From the NCBI RefSeq assembly GCF_000315625.1, contig NW_005434665.1:679220-743219 (forward strand): DNA of 64,000 nt, read 5' to 3'. Under the pieces are notes generated by a model. It saw only the letters and a list, made by a program, of their open reading frames with translations. It ran no database searches and was not told the DNA's origin. This document shows positions 1 through 30,739 of the stretch, one piece after another. The stretch comes from Guillardia theta CCMP2712. Its lineage: Eukaryota > Protista > Cryptophyta. Positions within the stretch are counted from its first letter, which is position 1; each line of letters begins with the position of its first letter. Both the position numbers and the translations under genes were made by a program.

Positions 1-3000
1 CATTGTCGACTTTCTTGAGACCTGTGATTCAAGATCGACTTCATAAACCAATGTTGGAAAAAAACTTGGCCATTCAATTCCACATTCTCAACAAATGAAA
101 GCAGCATTTTCTTCCCCCGTCGCCACCCTTCTTCTGAAAAACTCAATTTCTGTTTGATCAAGGATACCCAATCATCGATTTGCGATAAGTCCCAACAATG
201 AATGACGCAATCAAGAAGAATTCGCAATGCAAGGCTAACGGAGCTTCTGTCCGCCTCTCCTTTGTTTGCAAATCTGCACAATTTCTTCGCAAAGCTGAGG
301 TAATCAATGTCGAATATTTGTTTGTCTCTGTAAAATCTGATGTTCTCTTCCCACACATTTTGAAGAATTTCAAGCGGAATGGGTACAGATACACCATGCT
401 TCGTCATACACTTTTTTCGTTGATCATCCGTTGTCATAGACCTTTTCTCGTAAAAAAGCATGTATGCGCTGTACGTACGTGAGACCAGCTTAGTATGTGA
501 CCGCGAAGAGTCCATCGGATCAAGTTGCTGTATGCATTCACTACCACCATAGCATGCAGGACCGATGTCCTTTTCATCAAACAACTCGACATTAGTATCA
601 TTGAACAAATACCACTTTGCGGAATCATTGTCTCCGTCGAGGGAAACTGGTTTTCTTTCCTTGATGTAGCTGTAGTAATGTCCCGAGTCAGCTGTACCAG
701 TGTGTACCAAAACTCCTACCAAGTCATAAAGCGATTCATCATCCCCTTCCATCTCTTCAATTGCTTTAATTGGATCATTCCCATTCTTTAGAGCATCAGC
801 AGCAACCTTTTCCCGCCTTTCAATCCCCTGTATGGTATATGGATCCATCTCTAGAGTAAGAGGGAATTCACAACAGTCGTTCACCTTGACTTTTTTCATA
901 AAGTCAAGATCAAACTCAAAACGTTTCAAATGCAATATCAGGGTATTGGGAAGCTCCTTGATACAAATTCGCTTCACAGCGTCTACTTTTCGATTTGCGG
1001 CTTCGCACAAGTACTTGTTATCGCCTTCCAGAGCTTCGCCTTCCACATACAAATTCAAAGATTCGAGAATACTCCTTTTATGCTTTACCTCCAATTGTAA
1101 AGTATAGAAACTTTCTTCCCTCTCTGATTTGTAGGGATTGTCCCCGCCATACTCAATATCTCCAACTTTCACATTTTCTTTGCAGATGATTTGATGCACA
1201 ATTTTGCCGCCGAAGCAATCTCGAAGCAAGTTCTTCTGAGGAGTTTTCTTCAAAGATTCCTCCATTTTTTCGAATAACATATTTAGATACTCATCTACAT
1301 CCATTTGTTGGGTGATATTCAAAGGTTGACCATCATAATCTGTAAAAACCTGACAAAATTCCCAAGTATCATAAAACTGCTTATCACTTTCTTGCAAAAA
1401 GCTGAAAAGACATTGCAGCTGATACATCAGACCATTGAACTGCCCTGTATTCGTATCAACTTGCAACAAATTTCGTCGAAACTCTGGGACATAAAAGAGC
1501 TGTTGAATCAACGAATTCATATAACAGGTTGCACCAAGGTTCCTGAGCCCAACATATCCACATGGAGCTTTGTCAAGTTGCCAAGGGCGATATAAGTACA
1601 AAGAACGGAACTCTCGCCTGTCATGCAGCTTCAGCAAGCAATTGAGCACATCGTTTTGATTATTTTGACAATCTTCAACCATTGCACTGAGCAGGTCAAA
1701 TGCTGTTTCACGGGTTCTTGGAGTCTTGCACTTGGGTGGGCTAACAAGCTTCCTATCTTCCACTGCAGGCAAATCAAACAAGCAATCGAATATGAGATAC
1801 TTGATAAAATCATTCGAGGCGGGAGATTTGAATACAGTATTCTTCAAGTGAGGAGTAAGCTTGATAATTGATTTCAAGGTTATCATGTATCCCTGCAACA
1901 CAATATCCTCTTCCTTTGAATATCTTGTTTCTTTGATCTCGCTGGTCCTGATGCAGTTTACAATCTCCTTTACAGCAATGTCAAAAAAAGGATTGAGTGC
2001 AGTAACCCAGTCTTCACTGCGAGGGAGAAGTCCATTCAAGAGCTCAAAATAGTCGCTGCACGTTGTTGGATATTCCTTTACAGTATGAATAATTTCGAGC
2101 AAATTTTTCATGAAGAAAAAGTGCGGATGGATACAAGATTGATTATCCGAAGGCTCTTCCAGATTCATAGGATCCTTACTCCAAGCTTCAGAATTAATTG
2201 AGCAACCTCGCATAATTTCCGCAACAATTGATTGTCGGACGTTGTCACATGAGGTCGCAAGCAGAGTATCTTTCATCCATACTCCGAAATTCTTATATGT
2301 ATACAAATAGCGTACGCAAAGCGGTATTCGAATAAAAATTGATACGAGCAACTTCATAGCAATGATAGCAACAGTTTCTAATCCCTTTACAACACAAACA
2401 CTTTTGCAGGATGACTGGGTGTCTGGACTGACTGTAGATGAAGGTACAAGGTTTAAGAGCTCATGAATAAATTTTTCCAATTTTGTCTCGTCTTTCAAAT
2501 GCTCCTGAACATTCGAAGCTGTCATTGTTTCCTCACTTTCGATCATAATCATGTGTAAAACCTTCAGAAGCTTGGCCAGACAAGCGTGACTTTGACTTGA
2601 GTTTATGGTACACAATTTCTGTGAGAGCAGCATTTCCAGCAATTCTTTCAACCCCCCCGCGCTCAAGAACTTTGTTCTCCAGCCTTGCTTGCTTCCACAT
2701 TCATCGTCATCTAACAGTATTTCAACAATTTGTAATGCATAGAGTTGGCTGTACAATCCATCTGGTGATAATAGTTTTTTCAAGCAGGGACCAAGGTCCC
2801 TTATACTCAGTAAAAAGTTTTCGTTAGTTGGAAGCAACATTAACAATTCCCATACTTGTCCTGCAATTACTTCTGGCAATTTCAAAAATTCAAAAAGTTC
2901 ATCGAAAAAATCTTGTGCCAAAATATCATGCGGAGTCCTTATATCATTCATCATGTCGTAGAATTCAATCATTGAAGGGAGTGAAGCGTCCATCTTGGGA

Positions 3001-6000
3001 TCCCTGCAGTCAGCCCTTTTTACCCAGTGTACTGTGTCACCATCACCAATCCTTACATCAGAAATTGATCTGCCATCTTCCTTTAATTCCTTACCATGTG
3101 CAAACAAGCGAAGAGTGCGGCTGTCTTCCCCAACTTGCTTCGCAACCATTTCTCGGAGAATGGCAATCGTGAGGTTACGGTCGAACTGCAGGCACAGACA
3201 TTCATCTGTCGCCTGTGCCAAAGGTCGAATTCTGAGATTGACCCACTCGCTTCGAATTGTCCTACCATGCTTTCGCAGGAAAAGGTCTGGGTGCAATGCA
3301 CCTGTTGTCAATTCAAAGCTCTTCAGATAGTGCTTCAAAATCAAAAGGCATCGACTGATCCTCTTGAAATATATTTGATTTTTGTCAATAGCTCGCTTCT
3401 CACACTTTTTTGCTGCACCGCGCATGTGTTTCATACATGTCGAAATGTGTTCTTGCCTTTTTGCCAATACTATCTTCTCGAAATTATCTATCTGGGGCGA
3501 CACATGCTGATACAGACCATTGAGAAATGATATGGCTCTCAATGCCACAGACTCATCTGCCACACCAATTGCTACATCCCACAAATTGGAAATCCCCATA
3601 ATAGAATCGCTCGATACCACCAATTTTGGTTCACGTCCAAATTCACCTTCCAGAATACCCTCACTTCTGTTGAGAAGTGTCATGGCTTGACGAAAAAGGC
3701 TGAAAGATACTTCTGTCATATCTGCCGGATCCATAGTACAAATCAATTGGAACAAGAAGTGCAGATTAGGTAATATTGCTTTGGCAGTCCATTGACTGGT
3801 CAACAATCTTTCAAACCATCCAAAAGAAATCTCCCTCTGTCTCTCATCAATTCCTACTCTCAGAAGTGATTCCCAAAGTTTGTTCAAATGATCTGTTGTC
3901 AGCAACGATCCCTGCATCTCGAGCACAGTTGATATGAAATTCAATCTTCTTTGGAGTTGTTCCTGACGATGTAAGATCTGATTTATTCGTGGGGTGCTGG
4001 ATTGAGAATCGCAACTCCTGTTAAAGCCATTTCCCCTAGGTGTTCTTGGGGTACTAGGTAACCCTTCATCGAATTGCAAGACATTATTTCGAAAATATTG
4101 AAGGTCATCAAGAACCAGATCAAGGATCTCTTTCTCATCTTTCACGCATCCAAAGGTCGACCAGTCTACGTCTGGTTTTTTCCTCTTACTTGCTAAACTT
4201 TGAAACAAGTTATTCATCACAACAAGGCTCTGTGCGACAGATTTGTGTTCTTTCAAGTTGATAATACACCGTTTAAAATATTCTGATCGTATTGACCTGC
4301 ATTCATGTTGATCAAGCAATTTTGCAAAGCATTGTAGACAAAGATTTTGTATTTCAAGCTGGGATAGGCGGAATTCGTCTTGCAACACTTCCCACATAAC
4401 ATTGATTCCAGCAAATTTGATAGAGTCATCTATTTCACCTCGATTACTAAGCATTAAGAAGCACTGGGCCAAGCTGTTGATGAGCTGAACGTGATGAATT
4501 GTGAAACTCGAAACTGGTTGTTGACCAATCAAATGTAGCAATTTTTGAAGAGCATCAGGAGTATGTAGTAAACGAATGACTTTGCCAAGAAGTTCATGGA
4601 TCATTTTGGAAATGGATTCGTGCTGTCCAACGGAAGCATCCCACATCAACTGCACCTCTTGCTTTCCTATCCGATTACACTGAGCTAGGAATAGCAAGAT
4701 CTTACTGCATCTTTTCAGAATTTCAGTGTGGACATTCCTTATGAAAATTTCTTCCAGAATGCGATTTGATGTTAGCCAATCACACATGAAGTCAGCCGTT
4801 ATCCAAACAGACGGCAAGTCATCAACTGACATGTCATCTGGGCGACTGCAAGATCTAGCACTTAAATATTCCACGAATTCGTTGATCTCACCCAGCCCAA
4901 CCAGCCTCCTTTCCAGATAAGGAGATTTTAAGCCTTTAAGTGCAAGATCCAATCGAAATCTATCAACAACCTCCGATGAATCTCCATTCGATGTGATCTT
5001 GTATAAAGTACACAGGATTAACACAATGTCATTCAAAAACTGTGTCTCTGCTTTGACGTCTTCATCTGGAAAATTCAAAATAATTTCCTTCAATTTTGAA
5101 AATATCTTCATGAACCAATCCAAGAAGTCCTTTGTCAAGAATTCCTTAATGCTGAACAGCGGAGACAGCAAAGTCCTTATTCTACCGATTCTTGTACATA
5201 CATCATGCTGCAACAGTGCCTGCTTCAGTTTCCGAAACCCCCCGTTCCGACCAAAGGCATTGATGTTGTGTATGAAACGGCCTTCTACATTGTGTGCTCG
5301 CCCTCGCCTATTCCTTGTTTGACCTTCAGGAGAAGCCATCAGAACACAGAAATACAGCACAAAATATGACAAAAGATGAACAAAGAATTCTTACCTATTT
5401 CGGCGTATATTGCTTCCCGCATTTTGGCTTCATCCTCAAAAGCTTCTACCCCAGTTGGAGCACCATAGCCAGATATTTCTTCATGTACATCTCCGGAACT
5501 GTAGATCGATTAATAAAGCGTAGTTGCACTTCAAGACCATACCTATTCACATAAAATGGTTGATTTCTCTCCATAAAAATTTCATCCAAGATGATATGGA
5601 GCGGTTCAATTCCACATGTCAGCGTTCTCGCTATAAATATTAATGTGTGTCTGAGAAATCTAAATGCTCTATCTTCCATTTCTTCATCCAAATCCCTGAT
5701 TCGGACAGAAAATTTCAGCAATACCCCCAGTTTTACAGGGACATCTCACCCTCGCTTGAGGATGCACATAACAATCTTCGGAAGTGTCGAAGAAGCAAAC
5801 TGCATGCCCACAACATTATCGGATACCAAGTCTTCAGGATTCAAAAATTCCATGTAATCTTCCACGGCTGCTAACGCATTGCTGGGGTCGTCTGCTATCA
5901 AAGTGGAATCAGAATCCTTACAAATCGGTGTGGAATGCAAGAAACCAACCTGAACGAATAGCACTTTCGACCGCCTGTAAGTCTGCCAAAGACAAAATAG

Positions 6001-8477: not shown

Positions 8478-10301
8478 TCACAATTCATCATTGGGTATTC
8501 TGAAGCCAAATCCCAACACTCTGCGATTGCCTTCAGATAGTGATGAACAACTCTTGTCGTCGCATTCCTCTTCGCAATCTCCCTTCTCGCGCACTTTGTC
8601 CGCTTGAGCAACTATACTTCGATAAGTATCGTGCAGTCTCTCTGTGCAAGCATCCCAGTCTTCTGCGACGGTGCAACTGTCGGAATCCCAAAGAATAGTC
8701 CCTGTCTCCTGATCTTTCAGCGTCCTCGGGGATTTGCAGTATTCCTCCCCCAACAAATTGGCACAAATCTCGACAGCCGAGTCTCTCTTATCATCGATCA
8801 ACAACAATGTTTGATTGCCCGCTGTCAACTGCGATGCGCAGACCCTAACGCCGAGCTCGCTCACGCCATTCTGATGGTTGAACGTTAGTGTCATCTGATG
8901 CCCATAGTAGCGGAACCCCTCGAACAGATCGTCCATGGAGACGTACGTCGGCCTGTGTCCATGAAGGAAGGAATTAAGGTAGAAGGCTGCCATCCCGAAG
9001 TTGGAGCTGAAGGTGAAGATCAGGTAGTCACACTCTCCGAGCAGCGCGAGATCAGTATGCACATACTCCATGGGTAGAGCACCTTCCACCTTGGGCTGAG
9101 TGATGATCCGAAACTCCTTTCCGTACTCTGAGATCATCTTTGTCACGGCACTCTTCCGATCAGAACATACGAAGATTGTCCCAACACCCCCAAAGAGCTT
9201 GCGGATGCGCCTAGCCTCGTGAATGTAGTACTTGGTCGGGAAGCGCTGTGCTTCTCGGTTCTTATCCACCCCGAGCCTCATGTGGATGCCGATGATAGGA
9301 TGCTCCCATCCCATGAGCTTCTTTTGAGCTTCGATGAAGCTCCCCAACTTTGGTTTTGGCCGATGGAGGTAATGCGTCGTCTCAGTCCACCACCAGAACA
9401 GATTGGGAGGTTCAGGGAGGAGCTTCATGGCGACTTCAGGCATCTCGAAGATGCGCTCTCGATTCTCAACTCCCCAGAGATCCCCGGAGACCCGCACGTT
9501 GGATATGGAGATGTCATTCATATCCACTCCAGGCAGGGCCCGCACGCTTTCGAGGACATTGGAGGAGGATGCACACCAGGATAGCTCTTGGAGGGAGCCA
9601 AGCTCACCCCATGGAGAACCTTGATTGCTCTCTGTCAGGTTGAAGCGCCACTTCAACTCAGAGTTGACCAGGTTGTTCTCCCAGTCAGGATTCCCTACAA
9701 CGACACGCTGTGTTTGTAGACCGAGAGACATCGCTACGCGCAACCCAAGCAGCTGTGCACCGAAACCAACGATACCCCAGGGCTCCCATATCAAGAAGGG
9801 CATCGAACGACATGAAGTTTGGGGTGGATGCTGATGGTTGTAGAGCATTTCTTGCACCTTGGGAGAATATCGTGCGAAGTCCATGGAGGGATCGATGGGG
9901 AGCTCTTCGCTGCGAATCCCAACCGCTCCTTCAGGGATGGGGATGATGCTCTCAGGAGCTTGCAGCCTCGTGATCTCGAAGGCGGTGTAGTGATCAAGCA
10001 ACCCCGGCTTGCCTGTGTCATCCAACACTTGCAAAAGAAGATGATGAAGCCCTGCTGGCAGCCCTGGCACGCCAACTCTGACGTGAACTTCCCGTGTGCG
10101 CATGATTTCGTTTCCGTTGATGGCAATCAAGACCTGATACCCTGCGAAGTGACCATGTAGATTGTACTCAAAGTAGGCATCAGCATGGTCGAAGATTTCT
10201 CCCTCGTACGGCGTTAGCACCTCAAAGTGGCTCTCTGATCTTGCAAGACATGCGGCGAAGAGGATGGAGAGCGAAAGAAGGTCAGCTCTGACCTGTCCCA
10301 T
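8478..10301 (-). CDS. Alpha-1,6-fucosyltransferase-like glycosyltransferase (GT23/FUT8-like), secreted or Golgi, intronless
   Basis: Signal peptide MGQVRADLLSLSILFAACLARS. GT23 motifs GFGAQLLGL, PIIGIHMRLGVDKNREA, IFVCSD and DLALLGECDYLIFTFSSNFG. N-terminal Ig-like beta region. Confidence 0.8.
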   Translation of the reverse strand: MGQVRADLLSLSILFAACLARSESHFEVLTPYEGEIFDHADAYFEYNLHGHFAGYQVLIAINGNEIMRTREVHVRVGVPGLPAGLHHLLLQVLDDTGKPGLLDHYTAFEITRLQAPESIIPIPEGAVGIRSEELPIDPSMDFARYSPKVQEMLYNHQHPPQTSCRSMPFLIWEPWGIVGFGAQLLGLRVAMSLGLQTQRVVVGNPDWENNLVNSELKWRFNLTESNQGSPWGELGSLQELSWCASSSNVLESVRALPGVDMNDISISNVRVSGDLWGVENRERIFEMPEVAMKLLPEPPNLFWWWTETTHYLHRPKPKLGSFIEAQKKLMGWEHPIIGIHMRLGVDKNREAQRFPTKYYIHEARRIRKLFGGVGTIFVCSDRKSAVTKMISEYGKEFRIITQPKVEGALPMEYVHTDLALLGECDYLIFTFSSNFGMAAFYLNSFLHGHRPTYVSMDDLFEGFRYYGHQMTLTFNHQNGVSELGVRVCASQLTAGNQTLLLIDDKRDSAVEICANLLGEEYCKSPRTLKDQETGTILWDSDSCTVAEDWDACTERLHDTYRSIVAQADKVREKGDCEEECDDKSCSSLSEGNRRVLGFGFRIPNDEL

Positions 10302-16543: not shown

Positions 16544-19500
16544 TCATCCCCATGCTCTGCCCGATCTTCTTCATCCCGCTCTTGATCCCGTTGAGAGGAT
16601 GCCTGGCCATGTTCTGCGACCCTCGTCAGCCTCTCATCACCATCCTTTCCTTCCCCTTCTTCTCACCTGCGCTGCACTCGCTGCAGATCCTGCAACGGAC
16701 CCGAACTTGTCCAGAGCTCTGACGGCAACGAAGCGCGAGCTCACATGCTCGTGATGCTGCGCCGCCTTCCCCTGCGTCAATGTGAGGAGTGGACAACACG
16801 TGGGGAGGAGAAGCAGCAGGGGAGGAGGCGTACAAGAGCGCGCTTGCGAGTCAGGGGTTTGTTGCCAGCCTTCTGTGCGTGAGAGTGGCTGCCCAGGAAG
16901 GCATCGAGGCCCTTGAGCAGGAACTTGCTGCTGAAAAAACTCTTGCGGAGGCTGAGGAGCAGCCGCTGTTGAAGGTACTTGAGGAGTCCAGTCTGCGTGC
17001 GCAGCTGGCGGATCTTGTCGAGGGGAGGGATTGAGACGATGATGTCGTCAACCCGCTTCTTCCTGAGCAGCCTCTGCAGGAAGGGTGAGGGAGGGGGGTT
17101 GGGGAGGGGAGGTAGGAGAGCAGGAGAAGCAAGAGGGGAAGCAAGCAGAGGAGGAAGCGAAAGGGGAGCAGGAGACGAGGGCAAGAGAAGTACCTCGACG
17201 ATCCTCCCGAACTGACGTCGAATGATGTGACTCTCGTCGCCTGTGGACATGACGCTAAGATGCAACGTCCACTGTTTCCATCGAAGCTCGTCGATGTAGA
17301 TGTATGCCCCAAGATCATGCAGGTCGGTCACCTCCGCCCCTTCCTCGCTTCCTCTTTGGTTCAACACCAAGTCTGACAGGATGCGAATGTCTTCGCGCAG
17401 CGCCTCTTGCAGAAACATGTTGGCGTAGGAGGAGGAAGTGAACTTGGCCGAGAGCGCCGTCCTCTTGGCGTTGCTGCTCTTGTCCGCCCTCTCCTTGAGG
17501 ATCTTCCCGCCGAACCTGACGAGCTTGGCAACGAGACGGTCCTCGAGGAAGACGTAGGGGTCCCCGTTCTCGATGAGCACGTGGTTGAAGTACTTGCGCA
17601 CTCCCGGTTGGTTCAGCTTCTCCATCACTGCGATCTTGCACGCGACGTGATCGTTGGAGTCGAGGAAGACAACCACGGGGAACGGAGTGGAAGGGTCGAA
17701 CTGGTTGTCCAGCTGGAAATTCATGATGGAGAAGGAGACCTTGCGCGAGCTCGAGTCCTGCTCGACGGACACGTTCACGTCCTCCAGCTGTAGATGCAAA
17801 ATCTCCTCCGTGTGGGACCTCAGGTTGTAATCCTCGAGGACGAACCGGAGGCCGACGCTGTGCAGGTGCAGGTAGTTCTTCTTCTGCTCCTCGCCCTGCT
17901 GCCGGTCCCCTCCCTCCAGGTCTCCCACCGCAATGTGCAGCCTCTTGGTCCCTCCGTCCAGGCAAACGGTCCCGGTCAGCTGGCAGGCCTCCATAGCGTG
18001 TCTCCTGGTCATTTGCTGGGGACTCTCGTAGACGTAGACGAAGGGGGAGACAGTGATGGGCAGCTGCCCGCTGCTTGACAACTTCGCGCCGATGGTGATA
18101 ACGTCACCATGCTTCAGCCGGTGCTCGACCACAGGCTTGCCGTTGACCATGACCCCGTTGGTCGAGTTGAGGTCGAAGAGGATCCAGTTCCCGTCGAGGT
18201 CCTGCTGCAGCATGAGGTGTCTTCTGCTCACCAGGGAGGAGGTGACTGAGTCTGAGCAAGCGATAGTGAAGCCCATCTCGCCCTCCTGAGGGAGTGGGTT
18301 CCTTCCGATGATCATCTTCCTCCCTACCAGGAGCTCGATCGTCATCAGCCCCAGCACGTCCATCTTGGTGAACCGATGGCTGAAGGGCTCCTTCAGCTTG
18401 AGGATGTGGCTGCCGGACACGAAAGAGCCTCCACCCTCCGCCGCGCTCAGCTGCTTCTTCTCCAGCAGCGTCCTGACCAGGAGCCCCTGCGAGGACTGGA
18501 AGATGGGGATCCCGATGCTCTCGAGGTTGTCGAGGTCGATGGCTGAGGAGGAGGGGACTTGACAGCCGTCGATCTCGGTGAGCACGACCACCTTAGCGAG
18601 CATCGGCTCGGGCCAGATCATGTCGACCGTCTCGAAGGGCTTCACGCGCAGCACGAGCTTCCTGCTAGCATCCACCTGCTGGAACGCCAGGTCGAAAGAG
18701 CTGTGGTTGGTGATCCTGTGCGGAGCTCGCTCGCTGGGCTCTGTGATGTGTATGTACACTGGTCCCGAGCTCGAGCTCGAGCTGACCTCCACGGCGATCA
18801 CCCTGCCATCGGAGCAGCGAAGGAGGATGGGGCCTAGGCTGTTGCGGACAGGAGCGAAGATGGCGCAGTTGCTGGAGAGGTCTTCGGCTGCCAAGTTGAC
18901 ACTGAGCCTGCACTTGGCTCGTCCTCCTTCGGGGTAGAAGGGCGCAGACTGACCAGGCTCCAGCCAGAGAGTCGGACGACGAGCATCGTTGACGAACCTG
19001 ACGGAGGGAGAGGCTCGTTGCCAGACTACGAGAGGATCGGCGAGGTGGTTGCGAAACACGATCTCGGGCTCGAAGGAGATGACGATGGTCCTGTCAAACT
19101 TACCCGAGGCTGTACTGGTCGACACGTTGAGGTACAGCTCTCTCAGCGGGGTGTCCTGCTGAGTCCGCTCCTTCCCCTTCGAGTCGGGGGTCAGCTTCAG
19201 CTGCAGCCCATCAGCCGTCTGCTTGTCGATCGAGAAACCCTGAGTCCAGCTGAAGCCCTCCATCATCATCTCCAGCTCGTTCCCACCAGACGCAAAGTCG
19301 AAGCCGACGGGGCTTCCGACCGTCAGGCACTTGGTGCTGAGCTTCTCGGACATGGCGTGCGAGGTCTGGCGCACAAAGAGCGGCTCTCCCGTCAGGTTGA
19401 GGAGCCAGTACCGGTGGTAGAGACTGATCCTGAACCCCCCCGTCGACTTGTCCGCGCTGACTTCGACTACGAGCTGCTGGGCCTTGGCTGAGGGGTCGGA

Positions 19501-22500
19501 GATGTCCACGACCTCCTCCAGCTCGGAGGCAGCTGAGTCGCCATGCACGAGGATGCCTGCTGACCAAGGAAGCTTCTTCCCCTCACTCGTCACGATCCGA
19601 AGACGCAAGTGAAGCTCCCGACGCAGGTCGACCCCGAAGATCTGCTCAGACCCCCCCCGCGCTACTAGGCTGTCTGCGATGACGCTCTTGGTCTGGTCGA
19701 TCAGCTGGACTTCCAGGTGGTGGCAGGATAGGTTGTCAACCACCCACGGGGGGTGAAGCTCGACAATGCAGGGGTTCCCAGGGGTCCTCTCAGCTCCCGC
19801 AGCCTTCGTGACGGCGTCCACGAACTTGACCGTCCACGAGATCGAGTCCCTTGCTCGGAGCTTCTGCCGCTCGTACACGGCATTCTGATCCGACGGGTCG
19901 TTGGCTATCTTGGTCGCCTGCGGGTCAATGATCTTACACGTCATCGTCCTCGTGCGGATGCCGGCGTCGCCCGATGCGGAGATCTCGCTCCCTCTCCTCA
20001 TCGCCGTCATCTCTAGATCGCTCGAGGAGTTCCCCTTGAGGATCGGCTGGATGTCCTCCTGCAGCACCTTGTCTCTGTTCCACTTGCTGCTGCTGAGGAA
20101 GTAGGTTCTGCCGCAGTTGGAGGTCACCAGGATCGCGTTGTTCTTCACCAGCATCGACTTCTTGGGCTCAGCCGTCGCTACGTCCTTCCACTCCACTTGG
20201 ATCATCGGCATGTGCTCCATCGTCATGAAGAGGAGGTGACGGGTAGAGAAGACGATGTAGCCATCATGCTTGTGCACGTCTCGGTACCAGGATCCCGCGT
20301 AGATGGCGACGATGGCGTCGTCGGACGAGAGATTGAACGCGCCTCGAGCCACATCGTCCACGTCCTCCTCCACCTGAGTGACCCTGTTCTCCGGCATCAC
20401 CCCTAGGATGGTCTTGTACGTCTCCGCTCTGTTCAGCAGCGTGCGGAAGATGTGCGTCCTCTTGCTCGTCCTGACCTCCAGAGCGTTGGGGAAGACGTAG
20501 GCCGTGCTGGACTTCTGCAGGGAGACGATCTCCTCCACGGGGATGATGAACTTGTGCTCCCCTCCTATCAGGTTCGAGTAGTGGCAGAGCGCAAAGTCCG
20601 TGACGTACAGCACACCCTGTCGGAACACGCCGTCCTGATCGTAGGCACAGGTGAACCAGGCGACGAGCGTCGTGTCGAGCGGTAGCATCTTGCCGAAGAT
20701 GCGTTGGAACTTGATGTCCACACACTGAGAGGAGCGGACGGAGCCGTCATGCACGCTCCTGATCTTGATTGCCTCCCCCTGCAGGTTGCACCAGCTGTAG
20801 TCGAGCCCGTCGACCACGGGGCGGAAGAGGAGGGAGCCGTCTCGGGCATGCTGTAGGGGGACGGAGATGGAGCAGTCAGGGTGGATGACACCGAGCTGGA
20901 GCATCTCGTGGTCAGGGAGGGAGATGGCGCTCATGACGGGGATCTTCGAGCCATTCCTGACGCTGAGCATGGAAGAGACCACAAGGACCTTCTGCCCGTC
21001 GACGCTGCAGAGGTCGCAGACGATGTGGAGGGGGCAGGTGTTGCTCCTCTTGCCCGCGTCCCGCTCGATGATGTACGAAGTTGTCTTCTCCACCTCCATG
21101 GACACCCTGCAGAACACGTTGTGCGCATCTGCAAGCTGCAGGCAGACATGGTTGTCCAGCGCGCTGTCGTCCGAGTAGCGGACGGTCAACTGCTGTCCGC
21201 TCCTCCTCCTCCAGACCTGCTCGTACGTGAATTCCATCCGCTCCAGGCTGCGGACGGTGTGCTCCGATCCGTCCTCAAGGATGCAGACCAGCGGCTCTGC
21301 CAGCAGGTTGTGGATCGAGTAGGGCACGAACTTCTCAGCATGCAGCTGCTGCTGGGTCACAGCTGGGCTGGACAGCGAGTCTCCAAGATCCTCGTTGCGC
21401 AGGATGGCGAACAGCCTTCTGTCGTGCGTCCAGGACTTGATGGTGAGCTGGAGAGACTCGATGAAGGCAGTGGAGATGTGCATGATGCACATCTCGTCGG
21501 CAGCTTCCAGCAGGAGCTGGGTGCTCTTCGGGCCCGAGCTGAACTTCAGCTCGACATCCCAGGGCTCGACAGCGGGCCTCCAGCTGGAGGTCGGCCGGTA
21601 GAAGTACTCGACCCCGAGCCGCAGTTTGGACGTGACCTGCTCCTGCACGCCTGAGATGAGGATGTTGGGGATGCCGATGCGGAGGAGCGGGACCCAGCGG
21701 CCGACGAAGTCATCGACGAGGGTGATGCGCATGTTGAGGCCGAAGAGGCGGAGACGGAGAGGGTTGTCTGCTGCCTGCTCCAACTGCTTGCCGGGAGGAT
21801 GAGCTCTTGACGAGCTGCTCCTCTGTATGGCCCCGTGGCCCTTGGTCGGGTCCGGGGAAGAGAAGAAAACCCGAGACCGCAAGCTCAAGAGCTGGTTGGA
21901 CCAGATGCCTCGGGCAAGGATGATGTCTTCGTACGTGATCATGGCACAGAAGTCAGAAGCTGAGAAGAAGAGCTGAGGGGCCTGAAAGGAAAGATGTGAA
22001 AATTCAGCAGGAGCACGACAACATCAAGGTCGCAACGACCATGATACACAAAGCAAAGCAAAACGACATGAAACCAAAGTATCGCTGAGAGATGGCGTTG
22101 ATGTTGAATGACATAACAGACACTAAAAGGGAAAAAAGCTAGAATTGTCTTGAATTGTCTCACCTGGCCCTCGACATTCCTATGCCCATCTCCCTGGTAC
22201 CACTGTTGGGAGAAGGCGAGCAAACAAGGCCGAACAATCTGCATCCTGGCGTTGGAAGCTTGACGGTGATTCGAGCAAGAGACGAGGGAAAACTCGGCGA
22301 TGTCAACCCTGACGGTGCTCTCTGCCTCGAAGGCAGCATATAACACATCCACGTTGCCGTTGAGCCTGAAGTGATCAGCGTCGTCTCTGTACAAGTCGTT
22401 GACAAGGTCGATGGTCGCATCCGGCAACATGGTCTGCACGATCAGCCCCCCGGGATGTACAAGGCTGTAACGGAAAGCTCCGATCTGTCGTGAAACAAGT

Positions 22501-25500
22501 CAGGCGGCAAACAGAGAGAACTTGTGAGCAGGTGTACAGAGAAAAGAGGGGAGGAGACGAGACAGAGGCAGAGGCAGAGGGGTATGAGGAGAGAGGAGAG
22601 AGAAGGGGAAGGAGATTCGGCGAAAAAAACGGAAACCGAGTTCAGCGGAGGAGTGATTTTGATCCTCACCTTCTCTTGGAAGTCTTGGAGAGCAATCGAC
22701 CTGCCGCTACCTGCTCCTCTTGTCAGCTTCGAGTAAATACCGCATTTGTCGCAACCGACCTAACCAACCCAAGATGCCGAACAGCAAGCCAGTGTCAGCA
22801 ACACCACAGACCTGCAACGATCATGACAGTCAGTTGTCCTTTGAGCCCTCCTCCCCCGATGACGTTCAGCTCCATAAGGAGGCAGACAGACCAAACTTCC
22901 TCCTCAATTTCACATAGACATGATGCAGACCTTGCGGAACAGGAGATCTATCGACGTGTGCATGGATGAGGACTTGAAGAAGTGCAAGATGAAGACTCCG
23001 CGATCCGACTTGATATCAGGAGGGAACGAGAGAAACTTCAACGAACTGCCAAAGTGCATTTCGGACGATGATCTCGAGCTTGCCTCCTCCTCCTGCTCCT
23101 CCGCAGCACAAGAAATAACAGGGCTACTCCTCTTCCTCAAGGCCTCTCCACTGTCCCATATCTGCAAAACCTCCATCACAGGCCGCCCAGCCTCGCATGC
23201 GATCACCTCGAACTTGTCAAAGGTTGTTCGACATCTCCACTCCAGCTTGTCGTCCTCGTCGATAACTTCCACCTTGGTGACATCACGGTCGAGCACAAGC
23301 CTGTCGAACTGCACGTGCAGGCTACGGCCCACTGCTCGGACCATCTCGATCTCGTTCTCCTTACGGGATACGCGGACGTCTAGCTCGACAAGCCCGATCT
23401 GAGGACGACTCACTCGCCCGCATTCGCCTTCGCCTCCTCCTCACCTTCACGTTGTACTGCGAGCGGATGTGTTGCTTCTTGGACCCAAGCTTCGCGTGCG
23501 CAATGTCCTAAAAGCCAGAGATCAACATTACAGCTGCACGTTTACAACTTGTATCGTGAGAGGGTGTCTCATCTTGTTACATGTTACGCCAACTCCACAC
23601 TCCCCTCACCACTGAACCATACCAGGGCTCCCCTCTCCCCTCTCTTCACCTCCTCTCCTCGCGCACCTGCATCAGCATGTCGCAAATATTTCTCGCCTTG
23701 TGCTCGGCTCGCAGGTACTTTGCCTCATGAAAGAAATCATCTTCCGACAACTCACTTCTCTCCGTCATGTTCTCCCCGAAGATTGCCAACAGCAGCGCAT
23801 ACTGACAATCATTAATCGCCCCCTTCGCTTCCTTGAGGTCAATGAGCATCGACAAGCCTCCATCGCCCTCCTCCTCCTGCCTGCCTCCCTTCACCGTCCC
23901 GAGATGCGCAACCCCGTCTATCTTGCTGAAGATCGTCTTCCTGACGCCTTCGATGATCGACTCCATCTTCATGTCCTGCAGCTCCACCGACCACATCCGG
24001 TCCTGCGCCAGCTCCTCGCTCTTTACAAAGAGGTTCACCACCTTGATGCTTCCGAGGTCTGCAGACAAGCTGTCGTTTGACATGGAGTTCCGAGGGAGGA
24101 GGAGCACTGGGTGCTCAAGCTCAAACTCCACCTTTACCTTCGTCGTGCTTATGTCCCTCTTCTGTGCTGCTCCCGTTTCCTCCCCCGTCGAGCTCCCTGG
24201 CTCTAGCATGCTGCTGGCCTCGTCGAGTGCGCGGAGTTTGGAGAGGTAGTGGTTGAAGTCAGCGAGGAATCGCGATAGGATGGTGATCTGTGCATGCCTG
24301 ATCACCATCTTCACCGTGCGATCGAACCCAGGATAGAGGCTCGAGCGAGAATCGTAGGTGGCAATGTCGAAGGAGAGGCAGGAGGCACCGCCATCGTAGA
24401 CTTCGCTCCTAGCCAAGATGTCCTTGTTCATAGTGCCAGCTACGCACATGTCGACGACCTGCAGCGAGAGGAGGTCTCCTGTGATCCTGAAGCATCCGTC
24501 CACGAACCTCGTCACCTTCCCGTCCACTCCCTCCATCAGGATCTTTGCGCAGAAATTCTCGTCCAGCAGGTTGCCGAAGCACATGGAGATGCTGGGCAGC
24601 CTCACGGACATCTCCACCTGATCCCTTGGCCTCTCCTGCTGCTCTCCCCCGCTGGCTCCGTCCCCCTGCGACAAGGAGCCGAGCAGGTTGATGAGGATTC
24701 TCTTCATGATGAGCATGTCGATGATGGTGAGATGGACCTCCAAGGGGCTCGCGCTCAGCTCCACACTCGCTGGTATGCAGCCGACGAGATCCCTGGACCA
24801 GAAATTGGAGAACTGCAACGATGCTGGACGGAGGATGTTGGAGTCCGACCAGATGGGATCGGCGAAGACCTCGTCATCGTAGCTCGTGTAGCTCATCTGA
24901 TGGTCTGCCGGCACGAGTCATCGGCAGCGCAGAGGATGACAAGTGGAGGAGGACACGAGGAAGAGCAAGAAGGGAAAGGGGGCAAGGGGGGGCAGGGAGG
25001 AGGAGAAGCATATGACCTTCTGCAGCTCTGTGGCAGACGATGGTGAACTGCTCAAGGAGCCAGCTGAGCATGAACTCGCGGAATTTCTGCGACAAAGATG
25101 AGGACAAGGCGGTCAACAAGAGGAGGAGGGAACGGAGAGGAGGAGGAGGAGGAAGAGGAGGAGCGAAGGAGGAGGAGTCAACCACCTGAACGAACGAGAC
25201 GGTCAGAGAGCCCTCGAACAGGAAGGCGTCAGACTCAGCAACGGCAAAGTCAGTGACGAGGTGGATCCTGGCATCCTGCAGCTGGGTCTTGGTCAGCAGA
25301 GCTCCTGCTCGAGCCTTGGCGAAGCTGAAACCCTTCTCTTCCTCGTCCTTGCGTGAAGCAACTTGCCCTCCCTTTCCTGCAGCAGGGGGATCCATGAGAC
25401 AAACAGGGAGGGGGGGGGGGGGGGGGAGAATGAGGATTCAGAGGAGGTAGAGGGTAGGTGATGAGGAGGAAGAGGAGCAGAGAAGGAAGGGGAGGAGGAG

Positions 25501-28500
25501 AGGAGGAGGAAGAAGATAAAGGGAGTGGAGGAGGAAGGGGATAAGAAGCAATTGGTGGAAGTTTCAGACAAGCTTCAAGCAACTCACCGAGCCAGGTAAG
25601 AAAGCGGAGGATGAGACCCGCGTCAGCGATCGCTTCGGCCTCACGGAAGATGAGATCGATCCTCATGTGGAACGACGAGGTGCTGGCAAAGTGCAACTCG
25701 ACGCAAGGGGAGAGAGGATGAGACGATTGGCAAGTCAAGAACGGCAAGACTCGCACGGCGTTCATCGGCCGACTGTCGAGCACCTGAGATTTCGTCAGAT
25801 CTTATTGAAGGACAGAGAGGATCCTGTCCACCTTGGCGAACGAGAACGAGACGTCCAGCGACCACCGCAGACTTTCGTCATCCTCGCTCTCAGGGACCGT
25901 CGCCAGGTCAAAGAGCTTGAGGAGGATCTTGAGGTCTTTCCCGGACACGCGGAAGATAGGATCCTTCTCGCCCGAGCTGTCTTGACCCCCCAGCGCAGAG
26001 TAGAAGGAGACGTCAGCGCTCGCAATCTTGATGGTGCATTCCGTGTTGACGAGCTTCCCAAGGGAGTTGTCGACTGCCTTCTGAAGAACATGGTCGATGG
26101 TTTTCATGTTCAGCTTGTCGATAGTCAGCAACACCTCACCCAGCTCATTGACACCGCCGCCCTCCCCCTCTACGACGCATTTCTCCGTCAGGTTCTCTCC
26201 CAGGATGGCCGACAGGATGCCGTACTGCACGTCAGAGAACTCTCCACTGACGTCCTCAAAGCTGATCTCGATGTCGAGCTTGCCCCTCCCATCATCGACA
26301 GTGATCGGACGGATCTTGGCGCTTCCATTGGCGTTGCGGATGATCTCTGTGATGCAATTCTCGCTCTCCGTCGAGTCGATGCGTAGGTGCTGGAGGGTGA
26401 CAGACCATTCGGACACCATCGTGAGGGATGTCTCGTTCATGACTGAGATCCCCCCAAGGTCTGCAATGAAGGTCTGGTGCGAGCACGAGTTCCGCGGGAT
26501 GATCACGATGGGGTGCTGCAGGTCGATGAGGTATCGAGTCGTGTTGCGGCGGAAGTTCTGCCATGACGAGTCCCTTCTGTCCTCCGACTCCTCCCTCCTC
26601 TCCTGCAGAGCTCTCTCCCTAGTACCCCGCGAGAACGTCTGGAAGAAGTACCCGAGGAAAGAAGTCCAGACCCGGCGGAGAAACACGATCCTCGGCTGGT
26701 TGATCTGGATCTTGATGTCCTTGCAGTAGCCGGGGAAGGTAAGGGAGCAGACATCGTACGATCCGAGCTCGAGGTGGATGAGATGATCTGCAGACTGCGA
26801 CGTAGTGAGGATGTACTTGTACATGGAGTTGTTCTTGACGCTCTCCAAGATGTGGATGCCATCGAGGTCTCCCCTCAGCAACGAGGTGCCGTCAGTGAAG
26901 AACGTGGCATCTACCTTCACGTCGTCGAGCTCGATCCTGTACAGGCTCTCCTGCATGACGTCGAGGAAGTCGATGGAGATGCCGTAGCTCGAGAAAGAGA
27001 TTGAATTCTTTGTCTTCTTGACGCTGTTGTTGGAGGTGAAAAACTCTAGAGGAGCGTGCTTCGGCAACAGCGAGCCACACAGCCCAGCCCTCCACAGCTC
27101 CTCCTCTCTAGGAGAGAACGCATCCTTTTCTCTCGGGGAGACCCTCTGCTCCAGCGACGAGATGGCCCGAGCAAACCCGCCGTCCTCCCTGACTGCAATC
27201 TTGTACAAGTTCAGCTTGCCGATGTCCCAGGATTTGGAACACAAGGAGATGGTGGTGGAGATGAGTCTCATCACCTCCTGGTTGAGACAGACATCCAGCG
27301 CCATCATCTTGATCTCGAGCTCCTCCTTGTCCGCCGAATCTACCTTGTGAGAGGCCCTGAACAGCTTCATCTGACTCTTCACCGGCAGCCTTGACATCAC
27401 AACCTTCCTCTCCTCCTCCTGCGTGCGGACGAGGCTGCTCTCCACGTTGAAGTCGGTCATCGTGACACTCCACGACACGATCTTCTCCTGCTTGATCCAG
27501 CTGTTGATGCCGCAGAGGTTGAGGACAAGAACGTCGCTCTGCTCCTGGTCTGCGAGGACACGATCTTCTCCTGCTTGATCCAGCTGTTGATGCCGCAGAG
27601 GTTGAGGACAAGAACGTCGCTCTGCTCCTGCAGCACCGGGCGGTCATTTCCTTGGAGCTCGACGATGACGTTGTCGAGTTGCGCCTCCTTCCTCCCCCTT
27701 GGCCACCTCCTGCAGCACCGGGCGGTCATTTCCTTGGAGCTCGACGATGACGTTGTCGAGTTGCGCCTCCTTCGGGATGTCCCAGCTGACCAGCGGGTTG
27801 ATGGCCTTCTGCGCCATGCGTATAGAGCTGAGCCAGAGGTTGTGATGGTGAGCCGCGAAGATCTGCAGGGCCTGACGCCCAGCAGCCTCTGGTTGGATCT
27901 CGATGACCTTGAGCCCCTCCACACTCGCAGTCTGGAAGTAGCTCGAGTCGATCTCGACGATCTCATCCGGGGCGACCTCCTCCCCGTCTGACCTGCACAG
28001 GTGCAGCCCCGTCCTGTGCAACCTTACCCACCTCCAGCACCATCCGTCCCTTGACTTGATCCCGTTGATAAGGAGCCAGCCGGCCAAGAGGACGGCCGGC
28101 GACCTCGCCTTCCTGCCGTATACCGTCGTGTAAGTCCACGAGGAGATGATGCGGAAGATGTCTTGCAAGCACTCCTTGGACGCCGTGAACTCCATGGAAG
28201 AGACCAGAGCTTCGACTACGACCTCCTGGTTTGAGTTGACTTCGTTCGTGATCAAGTGACTGGTCACTGCAAGGTGCGTGTCGTCCATGATGCAGTCAGG
28301 TGTCACGTGCTCGGTCTCCTGAGACTTCAAGTTGATTCCCCTCAACAGATCTATTCCGATCTTCTCTACTCGAAACAGGAAAGTTGCAAAGTGACTCTCC
28401 AAGCGCCCTTCTTGGCTTGCCAGATTCGCTTTCTCCTCGTCACTCAATGACCCATTCTTCACCGACACATCCCCCAACTTGAGCAACAAGCATGAAGCTA

Positions 28501-30454
28501 GTTTGTCTTGATGTACATTCTCGTAGATCAACATGTTTGGCGCGGCAACGTGAACGTCGATAGCATAGTGAGCCCTTACTTTTCCGCGCAAGCTGCTCCC
28601 TCCTTCACTACCAGGTTGCCGATACCTCTTGAGACCTGAATATGCGTCCTTTGCGAACCGAGCTGCTCTTTCAATGTCCAAGGAGGCATCTGAAACTTCC
28701 CAGAAGCAGACGAGATTATGCATGATGTGAGGACTGAAGACCAGCTCCAGCTTAGTGATGTGCAGTTCAACACTCGTGTCATTCCTTTGCGTCGAGATCT
28801 TCTTGCTGTAAGCCATGTCCACCAGATTGGATGAACGATCCTCGGACTCTATCTCGCCTCCTTCGATTCGCCTGCACAACAAGTGGCCAGTGAGTACATC
28901 CCTGACTTGAAAAGAAGAAATCTTTGATCCTAAGGCTGTCTCTTTGGAATTCTTCATGATGTCGAAGGAGGATAGAGTCATTTCATACGAGATGTCAAAG
29001 TGAGAAGCTTGATCTATCAGACGAAGCTCGCACCGCTGCAATCGTAAAGCGACATGAAATCTCCTGCTTTCCATGTTCTGACTGATGCTCGAGCTTGAGT
29101 AAGTCTCGCCTATTTCAAGTGTATGCACATCCAAGGCAGCCAGCAAGGATTTCTTCTCTTCGGCAGACAGCCCTTGGAGTGGAGAGGCGATGGCATCTTC
29201 AACTGCTCCCTCGGGTGCCGCTTGCGACTTGGGAGCTGTCATGCGACTCCACCATGAAGCATTCGATTTCCTCTTGGAAACATTCGCTTGCTTTGATTTC
29301 ATCGCCTTCAAGGCAGTACACCTGAAGTAGACTACGTCATGAAAGGCGTACTGGTCTTCGAGCTCTTCGATCTCTTTCTGCTCTTTCACATTCAGATCTT
29401 CTCCCCGCTGTTTTGTGTATATTTGAATGTACTTCAGACGATGCTTGCGACGCTCCAACAAGTAGCCTACACTTCGCTTCCTCCTCCTCTCGCGAATGTC
29501 TTGGATCAGAACGTTTTGGATGTAAAGCCACCAGCCTCGAGGATCTTGCGCTGGAGATTTGCTAGGCCTGCCACTTCTGCACAGGGAATCGTCCCTCCAA
29601 TGTATGAAGAAATTCAATATTTGGAGAGAAGATCTGTACTGATCTCTGAAAAGCTTAAAGTCGACCGAATCTAATTGTATGGAAACCTCTGAGTTCGGTA
29701 GGTCAGGGTTCCGTTTGCCTGTCCTTTGATGGAACAAATCCAGCTGAACAGACGTTGGGCTCAAAATGTACTTGCTGCCGCCATGCATGCGTATGTCTTC
29801 AATGTTTGAAACTTTCTCACAGTCTACGCATAACCCTTCAAGCAGTACACTCTTGGACACATTGAACTCTTTGGAACCCTCCACCTCGGCATTTGTCAAA
29901 GACAAGCTGTCAAACATCAAGCCTAGGCTCGTTTGCGTCTCATGATCATAGAGCCTCAGCTCAAAGGTGGACACATGCACCTCAAGCTTCCTCACGAACG
30001 CTCGGAATGGGATTCCCTTGCCAACTTTGGTCGCTTCCGGGTCATCATTAGCCTCCGATACCGGTATGCTTTCTTCCAGCTGCAATTCCCATTGCTCAAG
30101 TAGAGCTCGCTTAGCCTGTTGCTCGATATCTTTGACTTGCTGTGGACTCAGTTTGCTGTCCTTCTTGCTTTGAACAAGAATATGAAAAGAGTCTATGCGA
30201 ACCTGGATCGAATGTTTCTCTTGCCAAACAACTTCGAGCTTTTTGAGAGAACCTGAAACCACTTGAACAGGAACTGCCATTCCATCCAGACAGGATGTCT
30301 TGACTTGGATGTTCTCCGCGGAGATGGTCCATACTTTCCCCTGTGTCTTTGCCTGCAAATTCTTTTTGTCGATGACCAGCCAACTGTGAAAGAAGTTTAC
30401 AAGTTGAAACATGGTCATCTTGCTTACCGTCCAACATACTTGGAGAGCAGCCAT
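16544..30454 (-). CDS. VPS13: VPS13-family bridge-like lipid transfer protein (~4000 aa, multi-exon) with PH, two GRAM and one FHA domain insertions
   Basis: Chorein-N (VPVQVVSGSLKKLEV, QQAKRALLEQWE), PAQDPRGWWLY, VAAPNMLIY..LLLKLGDVSVKN, two mid repeats (HPIVIIPRNS..ADLGGISVMN and HPVLLLPRNS..ADLGSIKVVN), SSWRPAVEPW, VAB-type repeats (PYSIHN, PWVVDNL, YWLLNLTG, HRITNHS) and C-terminal FQLDNQF..TPFPVV. Built from ORFs 27644-30454, 25802-27478, 23646-24914, 22910-23413, 21939-22439 and 16777-21942. Confidence 0.92.
27474..27773. repeat. Two overlapping exact tandem duplications (74 bp: 27474-27547 / 27557-27630; 67 bp: 27625-27691 / 27707-27773) forming an intron in VPS13
   Basis: Base-by-base comparison. 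GT at 27706 and CAG/GAG acceptors at 27545/27542 on the minus strand. Confidence 0.9.
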
Positions 30455-30739
30455 GATATGATTCTTTGCTTCAGCCAGTCCAGCATTTCGTCTCTCAATC
30501 TCCCTCGCGGACGACTTTCGGATCGGTGACTGGTGAATGTCCTGACCCTTAAGTTGCTATCTGCTCAAGTTATGGATGCTGGCTCCCTCCGCACACGGCA
30601 GGCAGAGTGCATGAGGGAGGAGCTTGCTCACTCCCATCATCCTTATCTCATCTCTCATCCCCTCACGACGCAGTGCCGCGGGGGCACGGCCGGACACATT
30701 CCTCAGTCCGCACCATTCGAGTGGAGGAATATCGCAAAT

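Follow-up and report, generated by a model that had tools for sequence, protein, structure and literature searches.

In templated insertions and serial template switching, as described for polymerase-theta end joining and FoSTeS/MMBIR (PMC7954356, PMC8654963, PMC12426944), sequence deleted at a break site is replaced by copies of its flanks. Intron gain by AGGT tandem duplication (Hellsten et al. 2011, PMC3265369; potato RdRp, PMC4974935) starts from duplicated exonic sequence, and a GT supplied by the duplicated AGGT permits an in-frame removal that restores the ancestral mRNA. Transcript RNA guides or templates the repair of breaks at intron-containing loci (PMC11390984, PMC12065846), the intron being deleted precisely in the cases known. 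Exitrons (Marquez et al. 2015, PMC4484396) are a known class of coding, stop-free segments, multiples of three in length, that lie inside long exons between GT and AG bounds. Here we analyse a 300-bp structure in a VPS13-like gene of Guillardia theta that shares traits with each of these systems. A fused copy of two flanking sequences, B and A, is nested in what appear to be the remains of a coding segment, termed X, that would originally have separated them.

The structure resembles templated insertions in the apparent replacement of deleted break-site sequence by flank copies, in the 6-nt microhomology at its internal junction and in the confinement of all pieces to ~300 bp, which gives it the look of a single event. 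It differs from them in that the template is itself a deletion derivative, with the flanks joined without X, and in that the copy sits within the one segment that it does not contain. A limited literature search retrieved no description of such a B-x-BA-y-A arrangement, from which we claim no absence. With AGGT tandem duplication the locus shares the duplicated exonic sequence, the in-frame removal between GT and AG, and identical copies, hence a young event. Unlike those cases, it is not a simple tandem; its GT stems from a Val codon already present in the ancestor and not from a duplicated AGGT; and the candidate splice would delete 28 conserved codons, so that the ancestral mRNA would not be restored. 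The proposal of the sequence-only reading that an intron was born by duplication sits poorly with a GT in a non-duplicated spacer and with two distinct repeats nested round a fused copy.

RNA-guided or RNA-templated repair likewise leaves, in genomic DNA and at its own locus, a junction without its GT...AG segment. In those cases, however, the intron is lost precisely, whereas here the ends of the segment stay in place with the junction copy between them; moreover, relatives have coding sequence at this segment, and the 6-nt repeat offers a DNA-only route to the same junction. X would agree with an exitron in being coding, a multiple of three, stop-free, located inside a long exon and bounded by GT and AG in G. 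theta, but the donor GT is absent in the relative Hanusia phi, and X can be called only a putative exitron. The structure is best classed as an unusual templated deletion-insertion of very recent origin within a coding exon, not as an old intron.

A nested duplication in a VPS13-like gene

The window, which is the whole 64-kb stretch of DNA analysed and spans C9:679220-743219, carries on its minus strand a VPS13-like gene with very long exons, extending from ~16.8 kb to past 30.5 kb. Among the Pfam matches, VPS13_N scores 132 bits (cut-off 80), above its gathering score, and the VPS13 adaptor-binding domain (VAB) 125 bits (cut-off 22.6), while VPS13_M is weak and falls under its cut-off; GRAM and FHA domains are matched as well. 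Judged by the VPS13_N and VAB scores, the host gene is a member of the VPS13 / repeating beta-groove lipid-transfer family. The C-terminal exon of 1721 aa (16777-21942, minus strand) unites VAB, GRAM and FHA, an uncommon mix for a VPS13-family protein, and the stretch immediately upstream of the structure resembles an inserted PH-like domain (GWCWRWV motif).

The structure occupies positions 27474-27773. Read along the minus strand, its order is B (67 nt), a 15-nt spacer (s1), fused B+A (135 nt), a 9-nt spacer (s2) and A (74 nt) (Table 1). The B1/B2 and A1/A2 pairs are 100% identical without gaps, with no difference in 141 duplicated nucleotides, and perfect repeats as long as 67 and 74 nt cannot reasonably be ascribed to chance. 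The fused B2+A1 amounts to the two flanks joined without X, through the CAGGAG that they share. The repeats are spaced by 82 and 83 nt, which sum to the 165-nt insert; with these spacings, B2+A1 is read one base off frame. The insert thus preserves the overall frame, and what is observed directly is a 165-nt block that is internally out of frame and carries a TGA created by its out-of-frame interior. In the comparison with the Hanusia protein described below, A1 gives a separate weak match to residues 881-909.

This anatomy, with its exact repeats, had been given by the sequence-only reading, as had a stop of the unspliced frame at 27644, and every coordinate was confirmed. The same holds for its splice arithmetic: deletion of 27706-27542 (GT...AG, 165 nt) yields LQE/QSD in frame, and deletion of 27706-27545 (162 nt) stays in frame with one extra Glu.

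Table 1. Features of the structure and of its surroundings in the VPS13-like gene.
Feature	Position	Strand	Description
Upstream open frame	27647..30556	-	VPS13_N match
B1	27707..27773	-	Native 67-nt repeat copy, ends CAGGAG, codes ...KEAQLDNVIVELQGNDRPVLQE; Hanusia P0001 alignment to residue 853
s1	27692..27706	-	15 nt, GTGGCCAAGGGGGAG, in frame, codes VAKGE, starts GT (proposed donor)
B2	27625..27691	-	Inserted repeat of B with 100% identity, shifted by one base from the gene frame
Stop	27644..27646	-	TGA in gene frame, inside B2
A1	27557..27630	-	Inserted 74-nt copy of A, fused to B2 via CAGGAG (27630-27625)
s2	27548..27556	-	9 nt, CTCGCAGAC, in frame, codes LAD, contains CGCAG at 27550
A2	27474..27547	-	Native 74-nt repeat copy, starts CAGGAG, codes QEQSDVLVLNLCGINSWIKQEKIV
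Downstream continuation	25832..27541	-	Continues the exon in the same frame; weak VPS13_M match; identity to Hanusia P0001 80%
Intron reference region	24905..25587	-	Three clear GT-AG introns
Reference introns	25587-25377, 25185-25087, 25016-24905	-	Join open frames

No template of at least 8 nt for either spacer was found within ~1 kb on both strands. Genome-wide, s1 has two other exact matches besides the locus. One of them extends to 18 nt (AG + s1 + G) in an unrelated coding exon (C56:246232-246249). This match is probably due to chance, although a distant filler template would look alike; we judge it so because the sequence is codon-like and a control count reached about half of the observed one, and the homology to Hanusia set out below supersedes it. 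A transposon or introner reading was considered and dropped, as the structure has no inverted repeats, no target-site duplication logic and no further copies.

The spacers match the two ends of a coding segment in Hanusia phi

In HMMER searches the exons were queried separately, not as a joined spliced model. With the 916-aa upstream exon as query, a match was obtained to P0001, the Hanusia phi protein EP00960_P020245 of EukProt, a set that we take to be transcriptome-derived. P0001 is 79-82% identical to the G. theta sequence on both sides of the site, and has, between ...PVLQE and EQSD..., a further 28 residues that are in frame and free of stops, AARPEGERRRTWSLSLKADRASVSLADE. BLASTP aligns the two proteins without gaps through s1 (VAKGE in G. 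theta, AARPE in Hanusia; of these 5 residues, 2 are identical and 2 conservative), and on the other side the alignment starts exactly at s2 (LADQ and LADE, respectively). Since s1 pairs with the beginning and s2 with the end of the 28 Hanusia residues, they are, as judged from these alignments, the 5' and 3' remnants of an ancestral coding segment X, which would have measured ~84 nt (28 codons) with a CAGGAG direct repeat on either side. Relative to Hanusia, ~57 nt (about 19 codons) are absent from the middle of X, if X was of equal length in both species. The spacers had been taken for the only novel bases of the structure; they are locally unique, yet homologous to Hanusia coding sequence. 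It follows that splicing, which had been thought to restore an unduplicated sequence, would instead remove a conserved 28-residue segment.

More distant sequences are also coding at this position. In the metagenome contigs L008 and L010 and the proteins P0014 and P0048, ~30% identical and informative on the continuity of the reading frame rather than as close comparisons, the region is a single uninterrupted ORF; over X they align with Hanusia without gaps and have an alternating hydrophobic pattern in common with it. The G. theta paralogue (C4:1042781-1046659, minus strand), which is 25% identical to P0001, is open across the equivalent region in a single frame of 1879 aa, with no intron there; it probably corresponds to a second Hanusia protein, P0004. 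In the AlphaFold model of P0014, the X-equivalent residues 392-414 coincide with a predicted strand (396-411) that follows the PH-like domain; with a mean pLDDT of 42, the model lends weak support to a beta-strand at this place. Taken as aligned, these sequences indicate that X is conserved protein-coding sequence rather than an intron. The sequence-only reading had looked to the intron position in orthologues, and Hanusia, the distant relatives and the G. theta paralogue are all coding there.

We regard it as very improbable that X is instead an old spliceosomal intron common to Hanusia, with P0001 derived from an intron-retaining transcript. The Hanusia X is 84 nt long, in frame and stop-free, as a retained intron could be by chance in roughly 10% of cases. 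However, it starts with Ala-Ala-Arg-Pro-Glu-Gly-Glu, for which the genetic code allows a GT in no codon and at no codon boundary, and a GT is impossible throughout its first eight codons. The distant relatives also carry a segment of equal length in uninterrupted genomic ORFs, and in the G. theta paralogue no intron interrupts this place. A pre-existing spliceosomal intron was accordingly judged unlikely: the ends are GT and AG, but the segment is not absent from the orthologue and the composition is not intron-like. An alternative form of the earlier proposal, an existing short intron whose middle was overwritten from a spliced-mRNA (cDNA) template, survives in part: the middle was overwritten, but the 28 coding residues of Hanusia and the open frames of the relatives and of the paralogue speak against an intron.

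The integrity of the locus bears on a further explanation, an assembly, cloning or sequencing artefact at a true locus of simple B-X-A form. A single assembly stands behind the structure, and template-switch chimeras are possible in vitro. Against this, both an X-less copy and a lost middle of X are required, and mis-assembly of a simple locus cannot yield both. The window contains no assembly gaps, and the locus is single-copy in the 87.1-Mb, 669-contig assembly, with no second copy or haplotype. In the window plus 200 kb from two other contigs (264 kb in all), no other perfect short-range duplication of comparable complexity was seen, which makes a pervasive assembly artefact unlikely. An artefact is thus unlikely, with a small chance of being the right explanation. 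On one of the sampled segments (C1:120001-130000, L013), a repeat of 267-nt period with perfect blocks of 50-76 nt (1258-3460) and a 28/86-nt minisatellite (9603-9760) were seen, both unrelated to the structure.

Candidate splice sites and composition of the 165-nt block

The ends of the block fit the GT-AG rule, with GT at 27706-27705 and AG at 27543-27542 or 27546-27545, and this raises the question of whether the block, whatever its origin, is now a newborn spliceosomal intron of 165 (or 162) nt, so that the gene would make a full-length protein minus X. As a reference we used three unambiguous introns of the same gene, leaving aside its first downstream intron, whose GT-AG pairs are ambiguous. 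The donors of these introns vary (GTGAGT, GTGGTT and GTCATA), their acceptors are uniformly GCAG, and the local sizes range from 99 to 211 nt. The candidate donor, GTGGCC, is similar to the GTGGTT of the neighbouring intron, 165 nt lies inside the local size range, both acceptors give in-frame products, and every downstream exon is still open, all of which agree with a spliced block.

The composition of the block points the other way. The reference introns are 78-83% pyrimidine (65-80% in their last 40 nt), their coding strand being rich in long CT/CCT runs, whereas the block is 42% pyrimidine, compared with 45% for the exon; its last 40 nt are only 40% pyrimidine, and it has no pyrimidine-rich tract. 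The acceptor that most closely resembles the real ones, CGCAG/A in s2 at 27550, would define a 157-nt intron and cause a frameshift. The in-frame splice would delete the whole of the conserved X, leaving a product without a conserved predicted strand. As for the GT...AG fit, it is a coincidence of about 1 in 16, given a repeat that ends in AG. The open downstream frames carry no weight either: with no differences in 141 nt and uniformly intact downstream exons, so little time has passed since the event that the absence of decay does not inform on function. Text searches for a G. theta gene model or transcript of this gene, over lengths of 55-525 and 808-2572 aa, yielded nothing from G. theta and at most Hanusia itself. 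Present-day splicing of the block is therefore doubtful in our view, though it keeps an appreciable chance.

Template switching as the probable source of the block

Any model of the structure requires a template that spans the site without X, either a slipped DNA strand or a transcript from which X was spliced. The reading that we prefer, with a probability of about 0.6, is a very recent templated deletion-insertion in an ancestral exon B-X-A, during which synthesis would have switched to a bridging strand that lacks X. The 135 inserted nucleotides match the flanks B and A at 100% identity, their direct source lying within a few hundred bp of the site, and the microhomology, scored at the internal junction, is 6 nt (CAGGAG). 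Because the duplicated sequence shows no differences in 141 nt, and the remainder of the gene keeps an open frame and an even level of conservation, the event would be very recent and would belong to the lineage of the sequenced strain.

The proposed sequence of steps is as follows. Slippage between the two CAGGAG repeats would generate an X-less strand bridging the locus, and X would then be nicked or broken in mid-segment. The 3' end thus formed, in s1, would re-prime at the start of B and copy 135 nt of the bridge with strand displacement, after which the new strand would be joined to the other half of X, in s2. As a result, ~57 nt of the middle of X would be swapped for a 135-nt direct copy of B+A, with 15 and 9 nt of X remaining at either side. 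Such a path would fall in the class of FoSTeS/MMBIR- or polymerase-theta-style serial template switches. It implies that the fused B+A, which had been taken for a spliced exon-exon junction, need not be one: it sits in the CAGGAG repeat, as microhomology-mediated slippage or deletion would give. The path is complicated, with three template switches in one event, and the X-less junction fits a GT...AG pair exactly, for which a spliced-RNA template would account without slippage.

Such an RNA or cDNA template is the other possible source of the X-less sequence. X would be an exitron (GT at 27706, AG at 27542), and a break inside it would have been repaired from ~135 nt of spliced transcript that was joined to both halves of X. 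The coincidence of the X-less junction with a GT...AG pair is then expected, two non-homologous junctions suffice instead of three switches, and both RNA-directed break repair at intron-containing loci and exitrons are described phenomena, which counts for an RNA template. Splicing, however, needs no 6-nt repeat, which beyond the AG would be a coincidence of ~1/256, whereas slippage predicts one. Furthermore, X is conserved coding sequence, with a GT impossible at or near the homologous donor position in Hanusia, the composition of the block is exon-like, and known RNA-guided repair yields precise intron loss, not a nested insertion. We hold repair from spliced RNA to be improbable. A DNA source of the X-less template is favoured over spliced RNA, since slippage predicts the 6-nt repeat, the GT...AG fit is a coincidence of only ~1/16, X is conserved coding and the donor GT is absent in Hanusia.

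In the most specific form of the RNA proposal, an exitron-spliced transcript templated the repair of a break inside the exitron, so that the block would be a DNA fossil of an exon-exon junction that may now splice as a newborn intron. This form seems to us quite improbable; if true, it would have caught in nature both RNA-templated repair and the turning of coding sequence into an intron.

Implications for the gene and for intron gain

Under the preferred reading of a DNA-templated deletion-insertion, the locus represents a natural, multi-step templated rearrangement in a coding exon at zero divergence, with each piece traceable, and an example of how a locus can gain a copy of a deleted or spliced version of itself. 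The case further illustrates how a scar may easily be mistaken for a new intron, given its GT...AG ends, its length divisible by three and its in-frame removal. As read from the reference strain, one VPS13-family paralogue is probably truncated: if the 165-nt block is not spliced, what the gene encodes is limited to the protein's N-terminal third, and if it is spliced, the protein would be without the conserved segment X. Should the block be spliced, or should its template have been RNA, the locus would bear on intron birth and on RNA-templated repair in nature.

The database matches to the VPS13-like region included P0064 (MGB1607659.1), a 245-aa fragment that is 33% identical to it and comes from an 859-nt contig of a metagenome-assembled genome labelled 'Promethearchaeia archaeon'; it most likely reflects eukaryotic contamination of an Asgard bin.
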